Shown piece by piece: positions 25,380 through 38,699 of a DNA stretch of 64,000 nt. This DNA is from Blastocladiella emersonii ATCC 22665 (Eukaryota > Fungi > Blastocladiomycota). Location of the stretch: the NCBI GenBank assembly GCA_025594325.1, contig JANHCV010000014.1, positions 310,001 to 374,000 of the forward strand. The letters are read 5' to 3'. The translations under genes were made by a program, and so were the position numbers. The first letter of the stretch is position 1. Every line of letters starts with the position of its first letter. The notes below the pieces were generated by a model. That model worked only from the letters and a program-made list of their open reading frames with translations. It had not been told where the DNA came from and did no database searches.

Positions 25380-26013
25380 TTAACCCGAAGAATCCGAAGA
25401 ATCCATAGAACCGAGATCGGCTTCGGACGACATTTCCGACAGCAAGGCGAGCTCGGCCTCCTGCTGCTCCGCGCCAAGCGCTCCGGATGCTGCCAGAACC
25501 CGCTGCTTCTGTTCGTCGTTGAGGCGGTCGGAGTTTAGCCAAAACTCAACGACCTCATTGTGCCCGAGTCGCGCGGCCTTGATGAGACACTTCACGTCAA
25601 AAGCGGCGTGCCGCGGGGATATCGCCAGCCGACGCGCGCCATGTAGAAAGCAGGTCTGTACGACCAGCAATTGATGCAAGCTTGACGAAAAAGTCAGACT
25701 CGGAACAGTCGTTGACCGATGGCGACGGGGGCGGTGAGTAGTATTTGAGCAACGCCTTGCGGAGCTGCTCGCGATTGAGGACCAGAGCGGCTTGGCAAAG
25801 CTTCTTGGTCATTGGATGCCGGCGAACAAAGCTCTGCAGCCGAGAGAGTCCGGGGGCAACACAAAGTAGCCGTCGCGCGTGCAAGCGCGCCGTGGCGTTC
25901 TTGCAGTCGCAGGCGCCGAGAGCGAAAATGAGGATAGACTCGACAAGTTCAATTGGTAGGCGCGGCAAGACGCGATTCGAAGGTTGCATCAAGTTATCAT
26001 GAGATTGCTCCAT
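25380..26013 (-). pseudogene. Family A copy A7, large internal deletion
   Basis: MEQSHDNLMQ..RLPIELVESILIFALGAC..FFVKLASI joined to the C-terminal FDVKCLIKAARLGHNEVVEFWL; ~630 nt versus ~1200-1330 nt for full copies. Confidence 0.7.
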
Positions 26014-26319
26014 GGTGGCCAGGGTTACGGATGTCGTGGGAGAGCGGGAACGCGCGGCAGCCGCGTTCAAGCCGAAAGCGTGAACGCGTTGCGCCACACA
26101 CATCACCCTCCCTATCGACTTGACCGTCAATCGTTGGACTCGGAGTCAAAGAGCCGTTCCGGTAAACTCATCACCAGAAAAGTGCGAGCCGGCATTTGTA
26201 AGCGGGGATATGGCGAGACCCGCAGCTGATTCCCGCTTGGTGACAGCCGCGGGCCTTTTCAGAACGGAGCTCGCGTCTCGGGCAGGAACAAGAGCGGATA
26301 TATTGGAGCAATATGAACA

Positions 26320-27648
26320 TCAACGTTCGTCATCCGAGTCAATTCCGTACTCCGAGCCTGATTCGTCAGGCTCAGGATCACGTTCGGACTCCGAATCAGA
26401 CTGCGCGTCCGACTCTCGCTCGCGTGGGCTTAAAGGGGCGCTGGCGGCCTTGGCAATCTTGGCCTTGACAATCTTCTTCACCTTCCGAATCTCCTCTTTC
26501 GTCAGGAGCTGACTCTTGTTGAGCCACCAGTCGACAATCTCGGTGTGGCCAAGCCGCGCGGCCATGATGAGGTGCTTCAGGTCGAAGACGTCGGTGCCAG
26601 GGAGCGGCTTCTTTTTCCTGGCTTCACGGCGACTGCACTCCTTTTCGAACCAGTTGAGACAACCTATCGCGCGCGCCTGGGTGGCTAGATCGAGAAACCA
26701 AATTTCCTTGGCGGCAAGCTCGTGGAATGGGAAAATGTTGGGCTTGTCTCCCATCACGTAGATTTCACCAAGATCCCCGTCGGCCCAGCAGAACGCCTCG
26801 GGAGGTCCGGCCATCCACTCGAGCATGTGCGGCCAGTCGTTATCGATTGCGTCGGCAACAATTTGGCCCCAGTCATCAATTTCGGCGGCCCAAGTAAACC
26901 CAATGTCGTCGTTGAAGAGTCCTCCGAGGCAAGGCGGGAAGGCGTCAAGAACACCAACAAGCCCGCGTTCGATCGCGCGCTCAGGTATCTCCTCGGTCTT
27001 TCGTTTGGCAAACTCGCGCCGCGCTTCCATGTCCGCGTGATCGAGGTAGCTTCCGTAGCCGTCGTCGAGAGTTCGAGGAAGGCGGTAGTTTCCCGTGACC
27101 CAGTTCAGCGAGCCGGTTTGCTCATGCTCGAAGGCAACCTCGTACGCGCGCTCGTAGTCGACCTCGAGTTCCGCCTTGCCCCACCACCGCAACGCCTTGG
27201 TCTTGCCCGTTGCGAGGGCAAGCTCAAACGCCTCGGTCGCATAGTCGACTGCGCAAACGTCACCCTGGGCTTCGCGCCACGCGTCAAGAAGCTTGGTCCG
27301 GCCCGCCGCGGAAGCGAGCTTGACGTAGAAAGCACACCCGAGCTTGTCGGCTGAAAGCGGAGGCGGGCCGAGAATCTCAAGAAGCGCATCGCGGAGCTCC
27401 TTGTTCGCGGGGTGCAGCGCGGCATGCCGAAGCCGCTCGCTCGAAGGACCACGGGTGATAAACTTGCGCAAGTGCAACGAGGGGACAGGGAAGACCCGGA
27501 GCAGGGTCATGGCCTGCTTGCGTGAGCGGATGCTCTTGCCGCGACAGCCGCCGAGTGCGATCAGGATGATTTTCTCGACGAGCTCGATGGGCAGGCGCGG
27601 CAGTGGTTTCTGCGGCGTTTGCATCAAGTCTTCATGTTTTTGCTCCAT
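26320..27648 (-). CDS. Family A copy A8, intact 442 aa
   Basis: Uninterrupted ORF MEQKHEDLMQ..RLPIELVEKIILIALGGC..KLASAAGRTKLLDAW..AARLGHTEIVDWWL, with an acidic tail. Confidence 0.8.
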   Translation of the reverse strand: MEQKHEDLMQTPQKPLPRLPIELVEKIILIALGGCRGKSIRSRKQAMTLLRVFPVPSLHLRKFITRGPSSERLRHAALHPANKELRDALLEILGPPPLSADKLGCAFYVKLASAAGRTKLLDAWREAQGDVCAVDYATEAFELALATGKTKALRWWGKAELEVDYERAYEVAFEHEQTGSLNWVTGNYRLPRTLDDGYGSYLDHADMEARREFAKRKTEEIPERAIERGLVGVLDAFPPCLGGLFNDDIGFTWAAEIDDWGQIVADAIDNDWPHMLEWMAGPPEAFCWADGDLGEIYVMGDKPNIFPFHELAAKEIWFLDLATQARAIGCLNWFEKECSRREARKKKPLPGTDVFDLKHLIMAARLGHTEIVDWWLNKSQLLTKEEIRKVKKIVKAKIAKAASAPLSPRERESDAQSDSESERDPEPDESGSEYGIDSDDER

Positions 27649-27822
27649 GGTGGCCGGTATTACGATCATTCATTGGAGAGCGCGGGTCGGGCGAACTCGC
27701 GGCGGTCGGGAGACATTCCAGCGACCGCTCTCGACCGAGCGTGTCCCCCACCGTCCATCACTGACCGACATCAAGTAGTCGCGAATGATATGCAAAGTTC
27801 TTTGATTGATTACGAACGACTT

Positions 27823-28779
27823 TCACTCACACTGGCCGCGCGCCGCGACAACCTCGTCCACGAGCGCGAGGATCTCGCACGCCGCCACGTCGTAGAAGAT
27901 GGACCACAGCATCTCGCCGACCCAGTTGACCGGGATCTTGCCGCCTGGACTGGCGGGCTCGGTGGGGATCGTCGGGAGCAGCTCGGTGAAGTAGAGGTCG
28001 AAGAACGTGGAGGGCAGCTTGACGCGCTGCATGGCGCGCTTGAGGAGGTCCTGCGGCGTCGCCTTCTCGTACTTGCCGAACATGTTCCACTTCCCCGACG
28101 TCGGCAGCTGCGAGTGCTCAGCGACGATGCGTAGAACCGTGTCCGTGACGGCGCTCGTCGAGCGCGCGGCTGCGAGCGTGTCGGTGCCGCGGAGGACCTT
28201 GTGCTTGCGGAGGATCGTGCCGAGCCGGTAGTGTAAGACCGCACAGAACATGGCGTGCGCGTCGTGAAGGACACCATGGAAGTCGGTTGGGCTGCCAGCG
28301 CACTCTGGTACGACATTCCGTTGGAGATACGACGCGACCCTCAAGTAGGGGAGCATCCCCAGAAAATGCTGGCCTCCCTTGGCCATGACGCTACTGATCG
28401 TGGCGTCGCCGCGCTTGGACAGGACCCAGCCAGCGTCATTGTACTCCTCCTTGGACAGCGGCGCATTAAAGTCGTCCCAGATGCGCTCGTCGACGTGTTC
28501 GAGCGGCGCGAACGCGCGGTCCCACTCGGTCTCGTCCGTGTACCGCTCGAGGCACCGGTTCACGAAGCCGTAGAGGTCCGGCTGCACCTTGAGCTTGGGA
28601 GCGCTCAGAAACTGGTCGAGCCCGGTGCACGTCTCCTGCACGCCATCGGTGGCCTTGACGACGATGCCCTTGGCCGCCTTGCGCTCGCGGCGCGTCTTGG
28701 CCCCCTTTACGCCGCCGCGGGCGCCTTTGACCTTGGGCAGCGGCCGCCCACGAGTTGCACCGAGTCCCGAAGAGTTCAT
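27823..28779 (-). CDS. Family B copy B1 (318 aa): catalytically dead, truncated non-LTR RT-like protein
   Basis: Intact ORF; WDRAFAPLEHVDERIWDDFNAPLSKEEY, RKHKVLRG, QRVKLPSTFFDLYF, MLWSIFYDVAACEI; no YADD motif. Confidence 0.7.
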   Translation of the reverse strand: MNSSGLGATRGRPLPKVKGARGGVKGAKTRRERKAAKGIVVKATDGVQETCTGLDQFLSAPKLKVQPDLYGFVNRCLERYTDETEWDRAFAPLEHVDERIWDDFNAPLSKEEYNDAGWVLSKRGDATISSVMAKGGQHFLGMLPYLRVASYLQRNVVPECAGSPTDFHGVLHDAHAMFCAVLHYRLGTILRKHKVLRGTDTLAAARSTSAVTDTVLRIVAEHSQLPTSGKWNMFGKYEKATPQDLLKRAMQRVKLPSTFFDLYFTELLPTIPTEPASPGGKIPVNWVGEMLWSIFYDVAACEILALVDEVVAARGQCE

Positions 28780-29311
28780 TTGTTTGCAGTGTGTGTGTTC
28801 GTTGCGATGGGGATGGTGGGAACCGTGCCTGATCGGCCGAGCGCTTTCAGTCCACCTCGCTCTCTCGTGTCGAAGCGATTTGACCGTTGCCGACCCAGAC
28901 TTGAGTCTTGCATCTCAGATTCTCCGTCAAAGATTGTTCAAGAACGAACAGCAGTGAATTTGCCTGATGTGCCGTCCCCGCAACACAGATTCGCGATTGG
29001 CGAGTCAAGTCCGTGAGCGACGGCCGTCATTGCCGAGACTGTGAACGACGACCATGGGCTCGTCCGGAACCAGAGGCTTGCTCTCACTCGCCCACTTTGA
29101 AGCGAGTTGCCGCGGTGACCTTGGCGCTCGCGCGTCGACGCGTCGAGATTCGCGTCTCGGTCACGTGAGTGGCTTTTTCAGTCCTCGTCCCTCCGCTTCG
29201 CTTCGGCCGGCCCGCTCACTCTTCAAACGCGTCGCCTAACGCTCAATCCGCAGTGCTAGTGAGTAAAATGGTGCAGTGTATTGCAAACGGCTCATTTATC
29301 AAGGACTCCGC

Positions 29312-30292
29312 TCAAACCTGGCCACGCGCCGCGACGACCTCGTCCGCGAGCGCGAGGATCTCGCACAGCGCGACGTCGTACAACATGTTCCACAGCTCCT
29401 CGCCGACCCAGTTGATCGGGACCCGGCATCCCGGCTTGGCGGGCTGAGTGGCAATCGACGGGAGCAGCTGGTTGAAGTAAAAGTCGATGAACTTGGGCGG
29501 GAGCTTGACGCGCTGCATGGCGAACCGGAGGAGCTTGTGCGGCGCCGGCGGCTTGCTGCTGTTGAACCAGGGCCAAATACTCGCTTCCGGGTTCAGCGCG
29601 TGCTTGGCGACGACGCGGAGCACCATGTCTGCGACCGAACCGGTCGCGCACGCGGCGGCGAGGGCGTCCGCGCCGCGGAGGACCTTGTGCTCGCGGAGGA
29701 CGGCGGCGATACGCTCGCGCAGGATCGCCGAGTACATGCAGTGGCCGGCCTGGAGCATCATGCCGCCGAGGTTGCTGTAGTCGGCCAGGCCGGTGCGCGT
29801 TCCGGCCATCGCGGTGTAATCGCTCATCATCCCGCCCACCAGCTTGCAGGTCAGCTCCTGAATCCCGATGCCCGTGCTCAGGATAAACAGCGCGGCCGTG
29901 TCGCCCTGGGCGCACGCGACCATGGCGGCGGGCCTGAACTCGTCCATGGTCGGCGCCGCCATCAAGTTGGACCAGATTTGCGGGTCGACGTGGTCGAGCG
30001 GGGCAAACGCGCGGTTCCACTCGTTGACGTCCTCGTAGCGCTCCAGCAAGCGGGACACGAGTCCGTGGATGTTGGAGTCCACGTCCGGACCGCCCGCGTA
30101 CTGGGCAAGGCCGTCGGCGTTCGGGTACAAGGTGTTCAGGACACTGGTAGCGTCGTTGGCGTCTACGTTGTTGCTGGCGGCGCTCATCGCCGTCTGACCG
30201 CCACGAGAGTTTGCCGTGTTCCGGCCGCCGCGAGCCTTCTTGCCTTGCGACTGCGGCCGTCTACCCGTTGCACCAAGTCCCGGTCGTTTCAT
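29312..30292 (-). CDS. Family B copy B2 (326 aa)
   Basis: ATG (MKRPGLGA) at 30292; same conserved blocks as B1; ends EVVAARGQV. Confidence 0.72.
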   Translation of the reverse strand: MKRPGLGATGRRPQSQGKKARGGRNTANSRGGQTAMSAASNNVDANDATSVLNTLYPNADGLAQYAGGPDVDSNIHGLVSRLLERYEDVNEWNRAFAPLDHVDPQIWSNLMAAPTMDEFRPAAMVACAQGDTAALFILSTGIGIQELTCKLVGGMMSDYTAMAGTRTGLADYSNLGGMMLQAGHCMYSAILRERIAAVLREHKVLRGADALAAACATGSVADMVLRVVAKHALNPEASIWPWFNSSKPPAPHKLLRFAMQRVKLPPKFIDFYFNQLLPSIATQPAKPGCRVPINWVGEELWNMLYDVALCEILALADEVVAARGQV

Positions 30293-30799
30293 GAGCTTCA
30301 GAGGTATTACAATCCTTGCAGGTAGGGAGAACAAGCCAGCAGCCAACGGTTCGATGAGTGTCGCCCGATGTGGCGCAGCGCGGTGCGTCAGCCCGCCGAC
30401 GTCTAGTGTTGGCAGCTCACCTCACCTCCCTCTCACCTCACCCTCACCAACCCTCACACGACGTGAGGATTTTCTCCTCACTCCTCACGCCGTGCCATAG
30501 ACCGGCACGGATTGACTTGACAGGTCGTGCATGTGACATATTTGGCGGTCTTATCCGGCGGTCCGCCGACCTTCCGTTCTGCTCCCCGAGGCTTTCTCCA
30601 CGTAAAATGTATCATTGATGGTCGCTGCTGAGCTTGGCCACGGTCTCGACGCAAACGACAGGTCTCGACCGCCAGTCCCTTGAGCTTGGTCGCGCTTGGT
30701 CACAGTCCCAACCCGGCCGCGGCCGCCTCGAACCACGAGTTTCCTACCTGCTCATCACGCCGCAGTTCTGTGACGAGCTTAACTTCTACTTGCGCGTGA

Positions 30800-31405
30800 T
30801 CTGAACGCCGTGCGCCTTCACCCCGCTCATCGAGTTGGACGACGCGTCGCTGTTGGACGCGTCGTTCATGTTCGCCATCACGTCTTCGATCACTGAGGTT
30901 GACATCAAGTCGGGTATCTGCACCGGCGAGGGCCTAGAGTTCCCGCGCGAGGCGCGCGACATCATCTAGTCGCGCTGAGCTCGATTGAAGCTCCCCATCG
31001 TCTTCGTCGCGTTCGTTCTTGGCAACCGCTACTCAGACCTGGTCGAATCGAGCCCATCGTTTCGCCGCGGGGCCGTCAACGCCACGGTCGCGCTGTTCGT
31101 CGTACTGTTCCATGAGAACGCTGACTAACTCATTCAAGCAGTTCCTGCGCCACGACCTTACGGGCGAGGATATCGCGCTCACGCTCGCCAGCAACGAGGG
31201 CAAGGCCGCGGACGCCCTTCTGGCGCTCGCTGCTGGCGGCCACGACGACGACCAGGATGCGGCCACCAACCTCTCGCTGTTTGACGAGCTCGATGCGCTT
31301 GAACTCGACGAGACCGAGATCGTGACGCAGCCTCTCGCCCAGGTCTACGCCGTCGCCGTCTCCAAAGTCGTGCAGAGCGAGGCGATCGGCCACCTCGTCC
31401 GCTAG
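30800..31405 (+). pseudogene. Remnant of an unidentified coding sequence
   Basis: Coding-like segments in changing frames with stops (IELDDASLLDASFMFAITSSITEVDIKSG; LKLPIVFVAFVLG; NSFKQFLRHDLTGEDIALTLASNEGKAADALLALA). Confidence 0.35.
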
Positions 31406-31787
31406 GCTGTGTTGACGACGCATCGCTCCCTTCCCCTCAGTAACGGAATACAACTCGCTCTCTTCTTCGTCCTCAATCTTTTGCTTGCTCGTGGTCGTCT
31501 AAGAACGTTTAGAGGTGCGCGGGGTCTGGAAATGACGAACCAGATTATTTCATGTCTTCGGATAGTCTTGATTGATTTGACACCTCACAGACTCCTCACG
31601 CTCACGGTGAGTCTCACCGTGTGAGAGTGAGCATCTTTGCCTCCCTCCTCACACGTGCCAACACTACCGACGTCCCTCGACATCGACCGAGGTGCAAGCC
31701 AAGGCCGATCCTCGACTGTCAGTCACACGACTTGTAGGTGTCAAGTAGCAAGGTCAGATATATTGTCTGCTACAACTACGACTCGAA

Positions 31788-32813
31788 CTACACCTGTCCG
31801 CGGGCCGCCACGACCTCGATCGCGATCCGATGAATCTCGCACAGCGCGACGTCGTAGAAAATGGCCCACAGCATCTCCGATGCGAGTTCGCCGAGCGGGA
31901 CACCGACGCGCGTGCGGGCAGCCTCGGGATCGAGCACCGGGAGCAGGGCCTTGAGGAAAAAGTCGATGAACTTGGGCGGGATCTTGACGCGGCGCATGGC
32001 GCGGATGAATAGGTCGTGCGGCACGTCGTACATGAACTGGGTGACGTTCATGAATTTGCCCCAGATCTTGTTGTCGCGCTTCCGTCCGTCGTTTTCGGCC
32101 ATGCACGCACGCTCGGCCACGATCTGGAGGACCGCGTCGACGACCGTGCTGCGCGACCGCGCGACATCGAGCTCCTGGACGCCGAGAAGAACGTCGTTGT
32201 TGGCAACGACGGAGAGAATCCGGTCGCGCAGCATCGTGGCGAGCACCATCGCAACGGTTTGGGAGAAAGACCCGTCGTCACCACCATCCGAGCCCGCTTC
32301 GTACGCAGGGCTCAAGGGCAGTATGCCCCGCCTAAGGCTCTCGTCTAAGTAGTAGACCATGTGTTCGACCTGTTCGTCGTCAAGATTGGCGAGGATATCC
32401 GCATCCGTGTCGCCACGCTCAACCGCCTCATCTGCGGCGAGGAAGAACTCGCGCGGCAGAAACGGCTCCGCGAGTTCCGCCCAGATGTTCTCGTCGACGT
32501 GGTCGAGCGGTGCGAACGCGCGGTCCCACCCGCTCTCGTCCGCGTACGGCTCGAGGCAGCGGGCCACGAACCCGTGGAGGTTCGGGTCCACGTCGGGCTC
32601 GATGCCGTCGAAGAAGAATTGGATGAGCCCGAGCTCAGACACCGAGTCGTCGTCGCCGTCATAAGCCCTCGATTCGGCCGCCTTCTGGCCGCCTCGACCG
32701 CTAGCGCTCGACTTGTTGCCGCCGACCGCGTTAGCCGCTTTTCGGCCGCCGCGGGCCTTTTTGGGCTTCGGCCGCGACCGGCTCTTCTTTGCACCAAGTC
32801 CAGGGGTATTCAT
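31788..32813 (-). CDS. Family B copy B3 (341 aa)
   Basis: MNTPGLGA start; YDVPHDLFIRAMRRVKIPPKFIDFF and GVPLGELASEMLWAIFYDVALCEI are the clearest RT motif A/B-like remnants. Confidence 0.75.
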   Translation of the reverse strand: MNTPGLGAKKSRSRPKPKKARGGRKAANAVGGNKSSASGRGGQKAAESRAYDGDDDSVSELGLIQFFFDGIEPDVDPNLHGFVARCLEPYADESGWDRAFAPLDHVDENIWAELAEPFLPREFFLAADEAVERGDTDADILANLDDEQVEHMVYYLDESLRRGILPLSPAYEAGSDGGDDGSFSQTVAMVLATMLRDRILSVVANNDVLLGVQELDVARSRSTVVDAVLQIVAERACMAENDGRKRDNKIWGKFMNVTQFMYDVPHDLFIRAMRRVKIPPKFIDFFLKALLPVLDPEAARTRVGVPLGELASEMLWAIFYDVALCEIHRIAIEVVAARGQV

Positions 32814-33007
32814 GAGCTTCGTTTTTGAGGGAGTCGGGCGTGAGGGAGAGAGAGTTGATCGGCCAAAGCGCTGGAGCTCGTTTACCGCCGCCGCCGCAGC
32901 CATCACACCGGCCAACACTTCGCTTCACACCACATCGAACCGGGCCAAAGAGTGCGTCTGTTGACTGGAGCGGGATATATATTACCTCTGTCGACGGATC
33001 GACCACC

Positions 33008-34002
33008 TCAAACCTGGCCGCGCGCCGCGACGACCTCGTCGGCGAGCGCGCGGATCTCGCAGAGCGCAATGTCGTAGAAGATGGGCCAAAGCGCTCCTCG
33101 GTCAAGTGATAAAGAGACACGCCGATTCTGTCGCGGGCCGCGTTGGGGTCAAACTCTGGGAGCAGTCCGATGAGCAGGAACTCGACAAACTCGGGCGGAA
33201 GCTTGACGCGGTCCATGGCGCGCAGGAAGAGATCGTGTGGCACCTTGCACTGCAGCTGAGCCTGGTTCATGAAATGGCCCCAAATCCCGTTGACGAGCGC
33301 CTTCCCGGACTTGACTGGCGCGCACGAGCGCGCCGCGACGATGTGAAGCACGTCGTCCGCGACCTTGCTCCGCCGACGCGCGGCTGCGAGCTGCTTGGCC
33401 CCGTGGAGCACGTCGTGACGGTCGAGGACAGCGTGTACGCGGTTGGCAAGAATCTTGATGAAGAGGTGCATGACCGTTCGAAGCAAGCTGGCCGGGCCGC
33501 GGCCGGGGTTCCAGAAAATGAACACGTCCTCGGTCGTATCCAGCGGGGGGATGCCGCACTGGCGAAGGCACAAGCCAAGAAAGTCGAGGACATTCTGCAA
33601 ATGTTCCTCGCTCCCGTTGACGAGAACGAGCACCGTCTTGTCGCCCCGCGCGACAGGCACTTCGGCGGCGGCCATGAACTCGGCCCGCGTCGGCGTCGCC
33701 ATCAAGTCGGCCCAGATGCGAGCGTCGACATGGTCAAGCGGAGCGAAGGCACGGTCCCACTCGGACGCGTCGGCGTATCGCGCGAGCAGGCGGGCGACGA
33801 AACCGACCAGTGCGGGCTGCATGGCAGGGCCAGGGCCGCGATTGAATTGGACGAGCCCGGCGTTAGACACTTCCCAGCGATCCTGAGGCGTGGTCTCAGC
33901 CGGCCGACGGTCGCCGCCACCCTTGGCCGATTTACGTCCGCGCGGGCCTTTGCTTCTGGGCAGCGGCCGGCCTTTCGTTGCAGCAAGTCCCGAAGAGTTC
34001 AT
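33008..34002 (-). pseudogene. Family B copy B4, 1-nt deletion ~30 codons before the stop
   Basis: MNSSGLAAT start; LLRTVMHLFIKILANRVHAVLDRHDVLHG; frameshift near 33085, after which LWPIFYDIALCEI..VVAARGQV resumes in another frame. Confidence 0.72.
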
Positions 34003-34221
34003 GAGCTTCGTGCGAGTGGGGTTGTTGACGGCGAGGAGAGCGGGTTGACTCACGCGTCAGTTTCGCTTGGCGCGTTGCGCCACGAGCCGTCGCGGTGCTG
34101 CCGCCGCACGAGCAGAATCCACCACAAACTAGGTGTGTGTGCTGCGCACACAATTGGGTCTCAGCTGTAGCTTTACTTGGCTTCTTGAGACTGTTTCAGT
34201 TGGTGAAAGTGAAGTAGTTTA

Positions 34222-35321
34222 TCAATTCTCAATCCTGCTCAGCAGGGACAGTCGCTCCATGTCCTTCGCCACGTGCTGTAATGCCTTCTGCACGAGAACC
34301 CGACTGTTGAACCGGATGATGAGGATGTCCTTGGTCCTGCGCGCTCGAGAGAGGACCATGTACGGGTACCGGGCAGGAAAACGATGCGGGAGCTTGGGGT
34401 CGCCGAAGTCGGCAATGACCTTGTTCAGGGTCATCCCCTGCGCCTTGTGCGCCGTGATCGCGTAGCTCAGCTCAATGGGGAACTGCGATCGCCAAAAGGT
34501 CCACCGCTTGCCGTCAATGGTGACAATCTTGCTAATTGTCTTGCGCTCGATGGGGATGTCACCCAACTCGTCGATTCCGTCAAGTTTTGGGATTCGCTGA
34601 AGGTCGCGGTCGGGTCGTACAAGGACAGCCTTGATCTGGCCGTCTTCATCGACAGCAAAGCCGACGACCTTACCCATCATCCCGTTGACGATTCCGATGC
34701 TGTTATCATGAATCGTTAGCTGGTGAGCGGCGCGGATTTACCTGTGTGCGATGAAACGTACCTTGTCGCGACGTTCCTTGTAACAATGACTCGCGCACCG
34801 GGAAAGAGTGTAATCGCGTGTGGCATGTGATCAAGTTGCTTTGGGGGAAGCTCTTTGATGCGCGCAAACAACGATTGCATCAATGCATCGCTAATCGCCG
34901 GTTCGTGTTGCTTCTCGGACCCGCTCGCAGTTCGCTTCGCTGGTCGAAGCGAATCTGGGTTGGAGAAATCCACGCTGGCCTGCACCGTCACAATCTGGTC
35001 GTCGCGAATGCCCAAGTCGCGCATATGTGTGGCTGCCGCACGATCATTCCATGCGTCACGAAGCTCGTTTGTCGAGGTAATGAAAGTCGCGTCGCGCCAG
35101 TCGTTGTTGTCAATGCCCATGCCTGGAATAACCTTGGCAATGTCGCGCTCCGCGATGAACGCATTGACCGCGTCTGTAACATTGCTGTCTCGGAGGTCTT
35201 GGAGCACCGTCGTAAGCTTGGCGTCGTTTGCCGACGAGCAGGCTGCCGCGGTACGCGACGGCCGTGGCTTGCAGCAAGCCGAGCGGATCGGTCGAGGCGT
35301 TGGCGTTGATGAGGGGAACAC
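34222..35321 (-). pseudogene. PIF1-like SF1 helicase, C-terminal half only, with one intron (34700..34761)
   Basis: FITSTNELRDAWN, ITLFPGARVIVTRNVAT|SIGIVNGMMGKV, RSQFPIELSYAITAHKAQGMTL, YMVLSRAR; no Walker A/B found upstream. Confidence 0.78.
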
Positions 35322-36070
35322 CAGGCGAGTAGCGGACGGGGATCTCGATGTTGAAGAAGAGGAAGGGGCTCGACGGCGGAGACGGAAGCTCGGAGAGAAC
35401 CGTGAAGCGCGACGAGCAGCGCAGCGAGAACGTGGGAGAGAAGTTCATGGTGTTGCGAGTGGTGGAGGAGAGCAAGGACTGTCAGCGGCGGCCCGCGCGC
35501 CTTTATATGTGGCCGCATGGCGGCCAGGCAGACGCCGGATCGCGAAGTATTAAGCGCTGCATGGGGTAGGAGTGGGTAAAGAGCTGGTCAGCACAGGAGG
35601 TCTCAAAGAGCGTCGACGAGCAGCGGCAAGCGCGAGCGAGCGGGCGTGGAGTGGGAGAGCTTCCGAGGACGCGAAAATGCAGCCAGACAGGATCGATGTC
35701 AGGTCACGTGATGCTGAACAGTCAGTTTCGAGCGAGGTCCGTCTCGTCGCGCCTGCGCACGGGAACCGCTGCACAGGACCTCGCTCCCCTCGAAGTGAAC
35801 AGCCTCGAACCGTTGGGGACTAGGCAAAGCACAGTCCAGATTTACGTTGCAGGGGTCGGAATGAAGTGAAAGCGAAAAACAACGGAACTCGTCGCGCGAC
35901 GAAAATCGAAAACGGTCACTGAGCCACTCATGTGACCACAAAAGCAAGGTTGATGTGCCTGATAGGTTTCAATTGCTCCCACAGAAACTCAGCTTCGCTA
36001 AAGCTACAGCTGAGAATAGGTTTCTAGGGAAGTCGCTCCATGGACATACATTCGCTTGCTCAACATCCGT

Positions 36071-37048
36071 TCAAACCTGGCCACGCGCTGCGACGACTTC
36101 GTCCGCGAGCGCGAGGATCTCGCACAGCCCCGCGTCGTACAGCATGGTCCACAGCTCCTCGCCGACCCAGTCGACCGGCGGCCGGCTGCCCGGGCTGATG
36201 GGCTCGGTGGCGATCGAGGGCAGCAGCTTGTTGAAGTAGAAGTCAATGAACTTGGGCGGGAGCTTGACGCGGTGCATGGCGCGCTTGAGCAGCTGCGGCG
36301 ACGGCGGCGGCTTGCTGTTGTTGAACGAGCGCCAGAGCCCGGCAGCCGGCGACTGCGCGTGCTGGGCGACGACGCGGAGGACCGTGTCCGTGACGGCGCT
36401 GCTCTCGCGCGCGGCCGCCAGGTCGGTCGTGCCGCGGAGAACCTTGTGCTCGCAAAGGACCGCGGCAATGCGCTCGCGCAGGATTGCCGAGTAGAGCGAG
36501 TGAAAGGCCTCGCCGAGCATGCCGCCGAGGTTGCTGTAGTCGAAGGTGCCGACGCGTCTCCCGGCCGGCAGGACGTAGCTGCTCATCATCTGGCCGATCG
36601 TGATGCACGTCGTCTGCTTGACCATGATGCCCGCGCTGAGCATGAACAGCGCGCCCGTGTCGCCGCGGGCAACACCGACCATGGTGGCGGTGTTGAACTC
36701 GTCCATGGTGGGCATACCCATGAGGTTCGCCCAGATGCGCTTGTCGACGTGCTCGAGCGGTGCGAACGCGCGATCCCACTCGCTCGCGTCCGTGTAGCGC
36801 TCGAGGAAGCGGGACACGAAGCCGTGCAGGTTCGAGTCTACCTCGGGACCGTCCGCGTACTGGCCGAGACCGTCGGGAGCCGAGACCTGGCTGTCGGAGC
36901 TGCTGCTGGCGTGGATCTCGGTCTCGACGTTGGCGGCGTTCACCGCCTTCTTGCCGCCGCGAGCGTTGGCGGCTTTCCGACCGCCGCGCGCGCTCTTACC
37001 CTAACGCCGTGGCTGGCTGCGAGTTGCATCAAGTCCAGAAGAGTTCAT
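36071..37048 (-). pseudogene. Family B copy B5, nonsense codon at position 16
   Basis: ATG at 37048 (MNSSGLDAT), TAG at 37001-37003; the rest of the frame is open to EVVAARGQV; closest to B2. Confidence 0.72.
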
Positions 37049-37397
37049 GAGCTTCAATTGTTGGCATGCAATCCGAGTTCTGGAGCTCGAGGCGCCGAGC
37101 GCGCCGCAGAACGCGTCTGCTCGCCCGAAGCTGGACGACGCCCGCCCGGCTCGTTCCTTTCGGCCAGCAACCCGCTTGTCACACCAGCGACTGATGCGAC
37201 GTGAGCATGAAGACCTTCGAGACGATCGCGCGCAAGACTATAAGTGGGCCGATCGCGCGGGATGCGCCAAAAACCAAGCAGCGAGCTGAGCCACCGCCAC
37301 GTAGCGACCCGACCGACCCACGCCTGCATCGCCGCTCAAGGGGAGCCCAGCTTCGCGGAATGAGGAAAAACGGTTGCGGTGTATGCACGACAGCGAC

Positions 37398-38555
37398 TCA
37401 AACCTGACCACGCGCCGCGACCACCTCTTCAGCGAGCGCGAGGACCTCGCACAGGCCCGCGTCGTAGAAGATGGGCCACAGAACGTCCATAGTGAACTCG
37501 TCGAGCGGGACACCGACCTTGGTGTGCGCGGCTTCGGGGTCGACCTCTGGGAGCAGAGCCTCGAGGACAAACTCGAGGAACGCGGGCGGGAGCTTGACGC
37601 GGCGCATCGCGCGTGCGAGGAAGTGGTGCGGAGCGTTGAGCTGCAGCTGGGCCTGGTTCATGAAGTGGCCCCAATCCCCGTTGATCGGCTCTTCTCCAGA
37701 GATGCTTGGCGCGCACGAGCGCGCCGCGACGATGTGAAGCACGTCGTCCGTAACCTTGCAGCGCTGGCGCGCGGCCGTGAGCTGCTTGGCGCCGCGGAGC
37801 ACGTCGCCGTGGCGGCGGAGGACGGCGAGGACGCGGTTGGTGAGGATCGACATGATCATGTCCGTCAAAGCTTCACCCATGCCGGTCCCGATCCCGCCGT
37901 CGAAGACTGGCTGCTCCGGGCGAGTCGACGGCAAGGTCTGGTCACGGAAGCACGCGACGATCAGGTCGAGGAAGCTCCGCATCCACTCGCCGCCGCCCTT
38001 GACGATGAGCGTGATCCCCATGCCGCCCTGCTCGAACAGCTCGTCGACGGTCTTCATGAGCTCGTCCTTGGTCGGCGGCGCCATGAGGTCGGCCCAGATA
38101 GCTTCGTCGACGTGGTCGAGCGGCGCGAACGCGCGGTCCCACTCGGCCTCGCCCGTGTAACGATCAAGGCACCGTTCCACGAACCCGACGAGCTCGGGCT
38201 GCATGTCCTCGTCGATGCCCCACCCGTCGCCGAACTGGATGAGCCCGGTGTGGTCCACGGCCATGGGCTCCCGCGGCTGCGTCTCGTCGTCCTCCAATCG
38301 ACTGCGCTGCTGGCCGATCGGGGGAAGACCAGAGATGGCGTGGCCACCCGGAATCGGGGTCACCGTGGCGCCGGGGATGTTGGTCATGACGACGCCGGTC
38401 CGCGAGGGGTTGGGGAAGGGGTCGGCGGCGCCGGTACCGCCCTCGCGAGCACCCGGCGTCGCTGGGCGGCGACCCTTGGCCGGCCTGCGTCCGCGCGGGC
38501 CTTTGCTCCGAGGCACCGGCCGGGCCTTGGTTGCACCAGGTCCCGAGGTATTCAT
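37398..38555 (-). CDS. Family B copy B6 (385 aa)
   Basis: Intact ORF MNTSGPGAT; ILTNRVLAVLRRHGDVLRG, RRVKLPPAFLEF, VLWPIFYDAGLCEV; closest to B4. Confidence 0.75.
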   Translation of the reverse strand: MNTSGPGATKARPVPRSKGPRGRRPAKGRRPATPGAREGGTGAADPFPNPSRTGVVMTNIPGATVTPIPGGHAISGLPPIGQQRSRLEDDETQPREPMAVDHTGLIQFGDGWGIDEDMQPELVGFVERCLDRYTGEAEWDRAFAPLDHVDEAIWADLMAPPTKDELMKTVDELFEQGGMGITLIVKGGGEWMRSFLDLIVACFRDQTLPSTRPEQPVFDGGIGTGMGEALTDMIMSILTNRVLAVLRRHGDVLRGAKQLTAARQRCKVTDDVLHIVAARSCAPSISGEEPINGDWGHFMNQAQLQLNAPHHFLARAMRRVKLPPAFLEFVLEALLPEVDPEAAHTKVGVPLDEFTMDVLWPIFYDAGLCEVLALAEEVVAARGQV

Positions 38556-38699
38556 GCGCTTCGTTTACGACGTAGCCGTTGTGAGGTCTTCGCTTTGGCA
38601 GGGCCGTTGCGCGATCGGCTGACCCTGCTCCGCTCGGCTTCTTCAGCCGGCCTGACGTCGCAGCCCGTCCCTTCTCTCCCCACCCTCACGTAAACCACC

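Follow-up and report, generated by a model that had tools for sequence, protein, structure and literature searches.

Truncated, probably non-catalytic genes derived from a LINE reverse transcriptase form a multigene family in Blastocladiella emersonii

The window considered here, a 64-kb stretch of the genome of Blastocladiella emersonii ATCC 22665 (G000:C6:310001-374000), harbors six paralogous open reading frames (ORFs), called B1 to B6, on the minus strand between 27.8 and 38.6 kb, four of them intact and two with a single lesion each (Table 1). We estimate at roughly 0.8 the probability that these genes belong to a family of at least 12 members, specific to B. emersonii and made up of two subfamilies (eight B and four C members), which encodes catalytically dead reverse transcriptases (RTs), descends from the lineage of a long interspersed nuclear element (LINE) called LINEx and keeps its reading frame under selection. 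The ORFs and their translations agree with the original prediction, made from the letters of this DNA, of six minus-strand paralogs at these positions, diverged and yet sharing ordered blocks and a common end. Amino-acid identity among the six copies is 38-65% (mean column identity ~43%); blocks conserved in a common order are interleaved with variable ones and the proteins share the end EVVAARGQV, with the exception of B1 (...GQCE). In all six, the opening M-N/K-x-x-G-L-G-A-T leads into a stretch rich in K, R and G, and 9-14 of the first 50 residues are basic; within the genome the first 95 residues of B3 are matched only in B copies. The database protein P0004 corresponds to B2, and tblastn finds B4 as two pieces in different frames. 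Two of the NCBI gene models, H9P43_009276 (626 aa), which fuses B6 to B5 (37398-38555 + 36071-36943), and H9P43_009274 (249 aa), which draws an intron across the B4 frameshift (33008-34002), appear to be annotation artefacts that work around the B5 and B4 lesions.

The likeness to RTs described in the original prediction is real, and the parental element that it proposed to look for is present in the genome. When B3 was searched against six-frame translations of the entire assembly, it recovered the B copies and many long LINE ORFs (E 1e-19 to 1e-23), including L031:3325-8517 (1730 aa) and L034:4331-9235 (1634 aa), both of which bear RVT_1 and RNase H domains, with an Exo_endo_phos endonuclease domain additionally in L034. 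LINEx is the non-LTR (long terminal repeat) element named after the L031 copy, and it serves as the reference for residue numbering. Residues 96-335 of B3 align with LINEx 288-547 by BLASTP (E 5e-27) and in tblastn all six window copies match exactly LINEx 287-547 (E 1e-16 to 1e-25), a segment that starts with motif 0 and ends with the helix following motif B. With the LINE segments included, a profile matches R2 and human L1 ORF2p residues 445-684 in the PDB (E 1e-30 to 1e-37). The AlphaFold2 model of B3 (pLDDT 83.6, pTM 0.79, with residues 1-55 disordered) was compared with known structures by an exhaustive structural aligner (VIA-align), and the top four matches are all non-LTR RTs, in a fold match seen with this aligner only and not with Foldseek: R2Tg (Z 9.7), L1 ORF2p 8c8j (Z 9.3, model residues 91-341 against chain residues 424-693), and 9hdo and 8sxt (Z 8.6). 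Prp8 (Z 7.0-7.2), a diversity-generating-retroelement (DGR) RT and group II intron RTs are ranked lower. A feature search of the ESM Atlas gave weak RVT_1-like leads only (score 0.86), and a DUF2780 Pfam match among the six B proteins was set aside as a chance hit. The derivation of the B genes from a LINE RT is settled by the LINE ORFs of the same genome.

Alignment of the B copies with the LINE proteins makes visible both what is lost and what is kept, and the erosion of the catalytic motifs described in the original prediction can be read from it directly. The KAPGxxG of the LINE is missing in the B copies, motif 1 (YLIPK) and motif 2 (RPITLLE) are deleted, F-E-D-K-S-K-A-F-D in motif A has become F-M/N-N... 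without the catalytic Asp, and GxPQG in motif B has become GVPLG or similar, with loss of QG. The motif A Asp is replaced in every B and C copy and all the proteins stop before motif C (Y/FxDD): those of the B subfamily terminate 10-12 residues past the motif B helix (B and C members all within 10-35), at a point that falls inside the loop preceding AYMDD/AYMGD in LINEx and FVDD in LINEy, a second LINE. On the other side of the balance, the B copies keep W.RAFAPLDHVD..IW..LM.PPT (of which W.RAFAPLDHVD..IW is the motif 0 block), VLRG, RAM.RVKLPP.FIDF between motifs A and B, and W.IFYD..LCE of the motif B helix. With the loops for dNTP and primer (KAPG, IPK and RPI) gone, the motif A Asp missing and nothing left of motif C or of what follows it, the B and C proteins are predicted to be unable to polymerise; they retain a non-catalytic scaffold made of the fingers and half of the palm, its first one.

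No other part of a LINE accompanies these genes. Three full LINE proteins compared with the whole window match nothing outside residues 287-547; endonuclease, thumb and RNase H sequences are absent from the 64 kb, and the 3' flanks of the B genes contain no poly(A) runs; the lack of an endonuclease and of a poly(A) tail had been claimed from the first inspection. Downstream exons that would supply YxDD, considered at that stage as a way in which the catalytic half could be restored by splicing, were rejected, given that no LINE sequence past residue 547 exists in the 64 kb and that the 3' flanks are not conserved. A conserved ...CAG/GT at the ORF ends was likewise discarded as a splice donor, the downstream frames closing at once.

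The B reading frame is under purifying selection. Under the codon model GY+F3X4, with a likelihood-ratio test against omega=1, omega is 0.26 on B1-B7 and omega=1 is rejected (2dlnL = 281); the five intact B copies alone give 0.31 (2dlnL 143) and the two closest triplets 0.21 and 0.23. When the same ungapped blocks are re-read in the two shifted frames, omega rises to 1.03 and 2.84, which indicates that the signal belongs to the real frame. The dN/dS check and the claim of frames kept open despite heavy divergence thus both come out in favor of the original prediction. Additionally, all indel runs between intact copies (6-12) are in frame. The B genes have a G+C content of 0.79-0.93 at third codon positions (GC3) and of 0.41-0.48 at second positions (GC2), and the DNA between them of 0.58-0.64. 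The divergence of the B and C copies postdates the loss of the catalytic motifs and of the C-terminal half, so that the selection cannot have been inherited from an active element; purifying selection after loss of the mobility functions (omega 0.2-0.3), as expected of a domesticated gene, is what the codon model shows.

These observations bear on the possibility that the copies are neutral fossils, that is, pieces of LINE in decay whose frames stay open as a side effect of a high G+C content. Such relics would be in keeping with the lesions in three of the eight B copies, with the spurious antisense ORFs of 349-439 aa in this region of ~64% G+C and with the NG86 pN/pS values of the B copies (0.5-1.2). 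NG86 was, however, rejected as evidence of neutrality since synonymous sites are saturated (GC3 ~0.88) and the codon model with its frame controls overrides it. Fossils are further opposed by the rejection of omega=1, with omega below 1 in the real frame only, by the in-frame indels, by flanks that are unalignable when the coding sequences remain 60-80% identical at the nucleotide level, and by the alternation of conserved with variable blocks. In a neutral simulation with 0.15-0.35 substitutions per site, from 5% down to 0.4% of copies stayed stop-free, yet of the eight B copies five are intact, with a single lesion in each of the remaining three. Neutral decay is consequently considered very improbable. 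The antisense ORFs themselves, on the plus strand over B2, B5 and B6, are by-products of the G+C-rich codon structure and not genes, so that ORF length alone is uninformative in the B. emersonii genome.

Several results weigh against a selected family of dead RTs. Taken alone, Pfam would not identify it: among the six B proteins only B3 gives RVT_1, with E 0.1 and a score of 12.7 bits where the cut-off is 29.6. A profile built from the B copies only found no match in the PDB (hmmsearch), and a Foldseek search of the PDB with the B3 model yielded none with an E-value of 0.001 or lower. The profile and structure check proposed in the original prediction comes out in its favor through the sequence match to the RVT_1-bearing LINE ORF and the structural match to R2 and L1 ORF2p. 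The B3 model is moreover almost entirely helical, and the palm sheet may not form. As for selection, the raw differences by codon position are nearly equal (0.42, 0.36 and 0.43) and amino-acid divergence is high; the omega estimate rests on model correction because synonymous sites are saturated and GC3-biased. Finally, lesions in three of eight B copies and in at least two of four C copies indicate high turnover.

The family extends well beyond the six genes first described. Two further B genes (B7 and B8) and the four C members lie on the same contig (Table 1). The C proteins are catalytically dead as well: GPExxDL stands for KAPG, YVVLPG for YLIPK and RFRSNTL for RPITLLE, and motif A reads F-L-T-K-N-T-A-L-F in place of FEDKSKAFD; they retain GIPQG and end where B ends (...LAVEVK...). 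A remnant of the endonuclease (APE) is found upstream at the C loci (P0009 residues 19-228 against L016:35-691, E 8e-9), and the heads of the C protein P0014 (MENECTGLAATHPTDRADPAPNNGGPRPRK) and of B4 (MNSSGLAATKGRPLPRSKGPRGRK) can be aligned with each other (E 0.001). In a maximum likelihood tree (LG+C20) of B, C, LINEx, LINEy and external LINE ORF2 proteins, the B clade, the C clade and the B+C clade each received supports of 100/99, and B+C is sister to LINEx (97/93), with LINEy and the external proteins placed outside B+C+LINEx. Long-branch attraction could inflate the B+C node; the common end point, together with gaps of 5 and 9 residues common to B and C relative to all LINEs, argues for the same grouping. 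Since the C loci keep an endonuclease remnant and P0014 and B4 have alignable heads, the most likely source of B is a C-like gene that lost its endonuclease and linker portion by deletion. The basic head of B, which had been taken for a new N-terminus, is probably no fresh addition, because it is common to the endonuclease-bearing C subfamily.

Another origin of the B 5' end, capture from the neighboring F-box-like 'A' genes, was suggested by a shared 12-mer and was rejected, as the 12-mer occurs genome-wide (188 copies) and the B head aligns to the C head instead. In the window, the 12-mer (GACTTGRTGCAA) has 13 sites (14717-38542) against 0.32 expected, all just past the ATG of seven F-box-like A genes and of the six B genes, and the frame in which it is translated differs between the two families. 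The B codons at this point (GGA, CTT, GGT and GCA) all end in A or T, in genes with a GC3 of 0.8-0.9. The genome-wide copies are exact, compared to at most 1 for the reversed control; among 20 sampled sites about half have ATGAA(Y/A) ~2-25 nt upstream, and several lie near an ATG, sometimes in clearly non-coding surroundings. The 12-mer looks like a general start-proximal cis-element.

All 12 members reside on contig C6 (1.25 Mb of the 32.7-Mb genome), in about five separate places, unlike the LINEx copies, which are spread over many contigs. DNA similarity between B copies extends no further than ~10 nt beyond the coding sequence at either end. Confinement to one contig, the absence of A-tails and this abrupt end of similarity suggest that the family spread by local DNA duplication and not by retroposition. 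The same evidence bears on the idea that B and C are non-autonomous 'half-LINE' relics, in which, as in mammalian HAL1, a truncated protein would promote the mobilisation of the element's RNA by LINEx in trans, and the frame would stay open to the benefit of the element. Such relics would account for the derivation from the 5' part of a LINE ORF and for a multicopy family with frequent broken members, and young LINEx copies able to act in trans are present in the genome. However, 12 of 12 copies are on one contig, in tandem or nearby, while LINEx is on many; they have no poly(A) or A-rich tail and, with similarity ending so close to the coding sequence, no shared untranslated regions or element termini; additionally, they are 35-60% diverged at the protein level, which is not the mark of young bursts. 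We hold half-LINE relics to be unlikely, though less so than neutral decay.

Regarding other organisms, a B-family profile was searched against 1.84 billion representative proteins. The seven matches below E 1e-30 are all B. emersonii B genes; the next ones jump to E 1e-23 and are LINE ORF2 proteins of 1,300-1,900 aa that cover profile positions 80-318 only, so no orthologue outside B. emersonii was found among the 1.84 billion proteins. A word-indexed protein search with the B proteins likewise returned own-genome copies only. The B/C family appears, from these searches, to be restricted to this one species, whose genome paper makes no mention of transposons or reverse transcriptase (PMC9730499).

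Table 1. Positions of the family members, 12-mer sites and other features (window positions unless a locus or contig is named).
Feature	Position	Strand	Description	Match or remark
B1	27823-28779	-	intact, 318 aa, ends ...AARGQCE	tblastn to LINEx 287-547, E 2e-16
B2	29312-30292	-	intact, 326 aa from conserved ATG	tblastn to LINEx 287-547, E 2e-19
B3	31788-32813	-	intact, 341 aa; copy used for modelling	BLASTP to LINEx ORF, E 5e-27
B4	33008-34002	-	single frameshift ~33091-33094, both pieces otherwise open	three-frame translation
B5	36071-37048	-	one in-frame TAG at 37001-37003 (codon 16), rest open	tblastn to LINEx 287-547, E 3e-16
B6	37398-38555	-	intact, 385 aa, longer disordered N-terminal insert	tblastn to LINEx 287-547, E 1e-21
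B7	L007:1489-2484		intact	contig C6, ~710 kb from window array
B8	L035:5480-6393		frameshifted	contig C6, ~710 kb from window array
C member L010	C6:563.8 kb		in-frame TGA	
C member L015	C6, 695.7 kb		355-aa open frame	
C member P0014	C6, ~698 kb		597 aa	KAI9152589.1 (H9P43_009381)
C member L016	C6, 713-714.5 kb		frameshifted near end	
12-mer GACTYGRTGCAA in B1	28755-28766	-	10 nt past ATG	
Same 12-mer in B2	30268-30279	-		
Same 12-mer in B3	32789-32800	-		
Same 12-mer in B4	33978-33989	-		
Same 12-mer in B5	37024-37035	-		
Same 12-mer in B6	38531-38542	-		
LINEx copy L017	C2:3012		near contig end	
LINEx copy L018	C6:5248		near contig end	
LINEx copy L021	C21:4244		near contig end	
LINEx copy L011/L031	C19:2011873		near contig end	
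LINEx copy L012	C15:2634584		near contig end	
LINEx copy L027	C3:1495685		near contig end	
Two A array members	25597-27669	-	MEQ..DLMQ...LPRLPIELVE heads	end 154 bp downstream of B1
Antisense ORF over B2	29276-30325	+		
Antisense ORF over B5	36056-37204	+		
Antisense ORF over B6	37374-38693	+		
B3-B2 insert	30400-31700		1.3 kb; coding-like remnant at 30800-31450	
GTGAGG-rich stretches	~31590-31690 and ~30410-30530		partly inverted	flank B3-B2 insert
Helicase fragment	34222-35321	-	PIF1/UvrD-like C-terminus	weak Pfam: UvrD_C_2, Herpes_Helicase
780-aa ORF	L035:2116-4458 (G000:C6:~1,048,100-1,050,450)		DUF5906 + VapE-like (D5-type primase-helicase)	~1 kb from B8

The array contains other sequences besides the B genes. 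The wide spacing between B4 and B5 is due to a fragment of a helicase C-terminus, possibly a Helitron remnant, and the insert between B3 and B2, flanked by GTGAGG-rich stretches, is possibly a decayed transposon. Downstream of B1 lie two neighboring A array members, in which Pfam detects no domain. The 780-aa ORF near B8 looks like part of a virus-like insertion. With respect to the parental lineage, six of about ten LINEx-type copies sit 3-8 kb from a contig end. LINEx has AYMDD as motif C (AYMGD in L031), and in none of the frames upstream of the L031 RT was any similarity to an APE endonuclease seen, whereas LINEy and the external relatives possess this domain; LINEx may represent a LINE lineage that is associated with telomeres and lacks an endonuclease.

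In the most probable account, one ancestral 3'-truncated copy of the LINEx lineage gave rise to the B and C genes. C has kept a degenerate endonuclease and linker, and B has deleted both, which places a basic, disordered K/R/G-rich head directly before the dead RT core; the family spread by local DNA duplication and evolves fast by birth and death, with the reading frame under purifying selection. The retained fingers surface and the basic tail would together form a non-enzymatic RNA- or RNP (ribonucleoprotein)-binding module, and such binding is the most likely role of the B and C proteins as judged from what their sequences preserve. Within this role, decoy or dominant-negative action on the still-young LINEx elements is favored, tentatively, because the genes turn over fast by birth and death, are restricted to one species and coexist with young LINEx copies; the more specific proposal, that the proteins are host-encoded decoys that bind the LINEx RNA or priming complex through motif 0, the fingers and the basic tail and thereby restrain LINEx, is a little more doubtful still. 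About equally likely as a LINEx decoy is a neofunctionalised host protein unrelated to transposon control, in which a generic RNA- or protein-binding fold would serve a stage-specific process and be co-regulated with the F-box-like array. Purifying selection on the frame would be expected of it too, the start-proximal 12-mer is common to the adjacent A family and to 188 places in the genome, and the 55 basic, disordered N-terminal residues resemble a nuclear-localisation or RGG-type tail; on the other hand, fast birth and death without an orthologue outside the species would be unusual for a core cellular role. Should the decoy proposal hold, the family would be the first retrotransposon restriction factor made from the element's own polymerase domain, and action of B and C on their parent LINE would amount to a new kind of self-derived transposon control, in a species now under development as a model for the laboratory. 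The series from LINEx to C, with its endonuclease remnant, and on to B, with the remnant deleted, all in one genome, offers an unusually clear picture of a polymerase reduced to a scaffold.

Compared with known systems, the B/C proteins are homologous to the LINE ORF2 RTs (LINEx, R2 and human L1 ORF2p) from motif 0 to the motif B helix, and the B3 model superposes on L1 424-693 and on R2; they differ by the absence of the motif A Asp, motif C, thumb and RNase H, and in B also of the endonuclease. B and C genes also lack the dispersal and the 3' tail of LINE insertions. Co-option of retroelements is well documented for gag, env, integrase, protease and LINE ORF1, with telomerase and Prp8 as the ancient polymerase cases. 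The RT-like domain of Prp8 is a catalytically dead RT fold that serves as a scaffold and is ancient, universal, single-copy and full length; it shares the dead fold with the B/C proteins and is among the B3 structural matches, but B and C are young, multicopy and truncated. The KP protein of the P element, a fragment of a DNA transposase, is a truncated element protein that represses its parent element. No sequence relationship of B or C to Prp8 or KP was found. The rvt genes of fungi and other eukaryotes (Gladyshev and Arkhipova) are domesticated single-copy RTs, present in many taxa and not LINE-derived, that keep their catalytic core and full length; they are RT-derived host genes in fungi as B and C are, whereas the latter are dead, truncated, LINE-derived and limited to one species. 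As far as our searches of the literature reach, and in line with the original prediction, a selected multigene family from the non-catalytic front half of a LINE RT has not been described. The nearest fungal precedent is the EKA (Avrk1/Avra10) family of Blumeria graminis, which was co-opted from a truncated LINE ORF1 and has over 1,350 homologues, scattered along with the element, with members that act as plant-pathogen effectors (PMC4641428, PMC2759079). Both are fungal, species-restricted and fast-evolving multigene families from truncated LINE coding sequence; unlike EKA, the B/C family comes from the RT part of an APE-RT-RNase H ORF, comprises about 12 members on one contig and resides in a saprotrophic water fungus. 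The B/C family is, in this comparison, a variant of a known phenomenon, the co-option of transposon genes.

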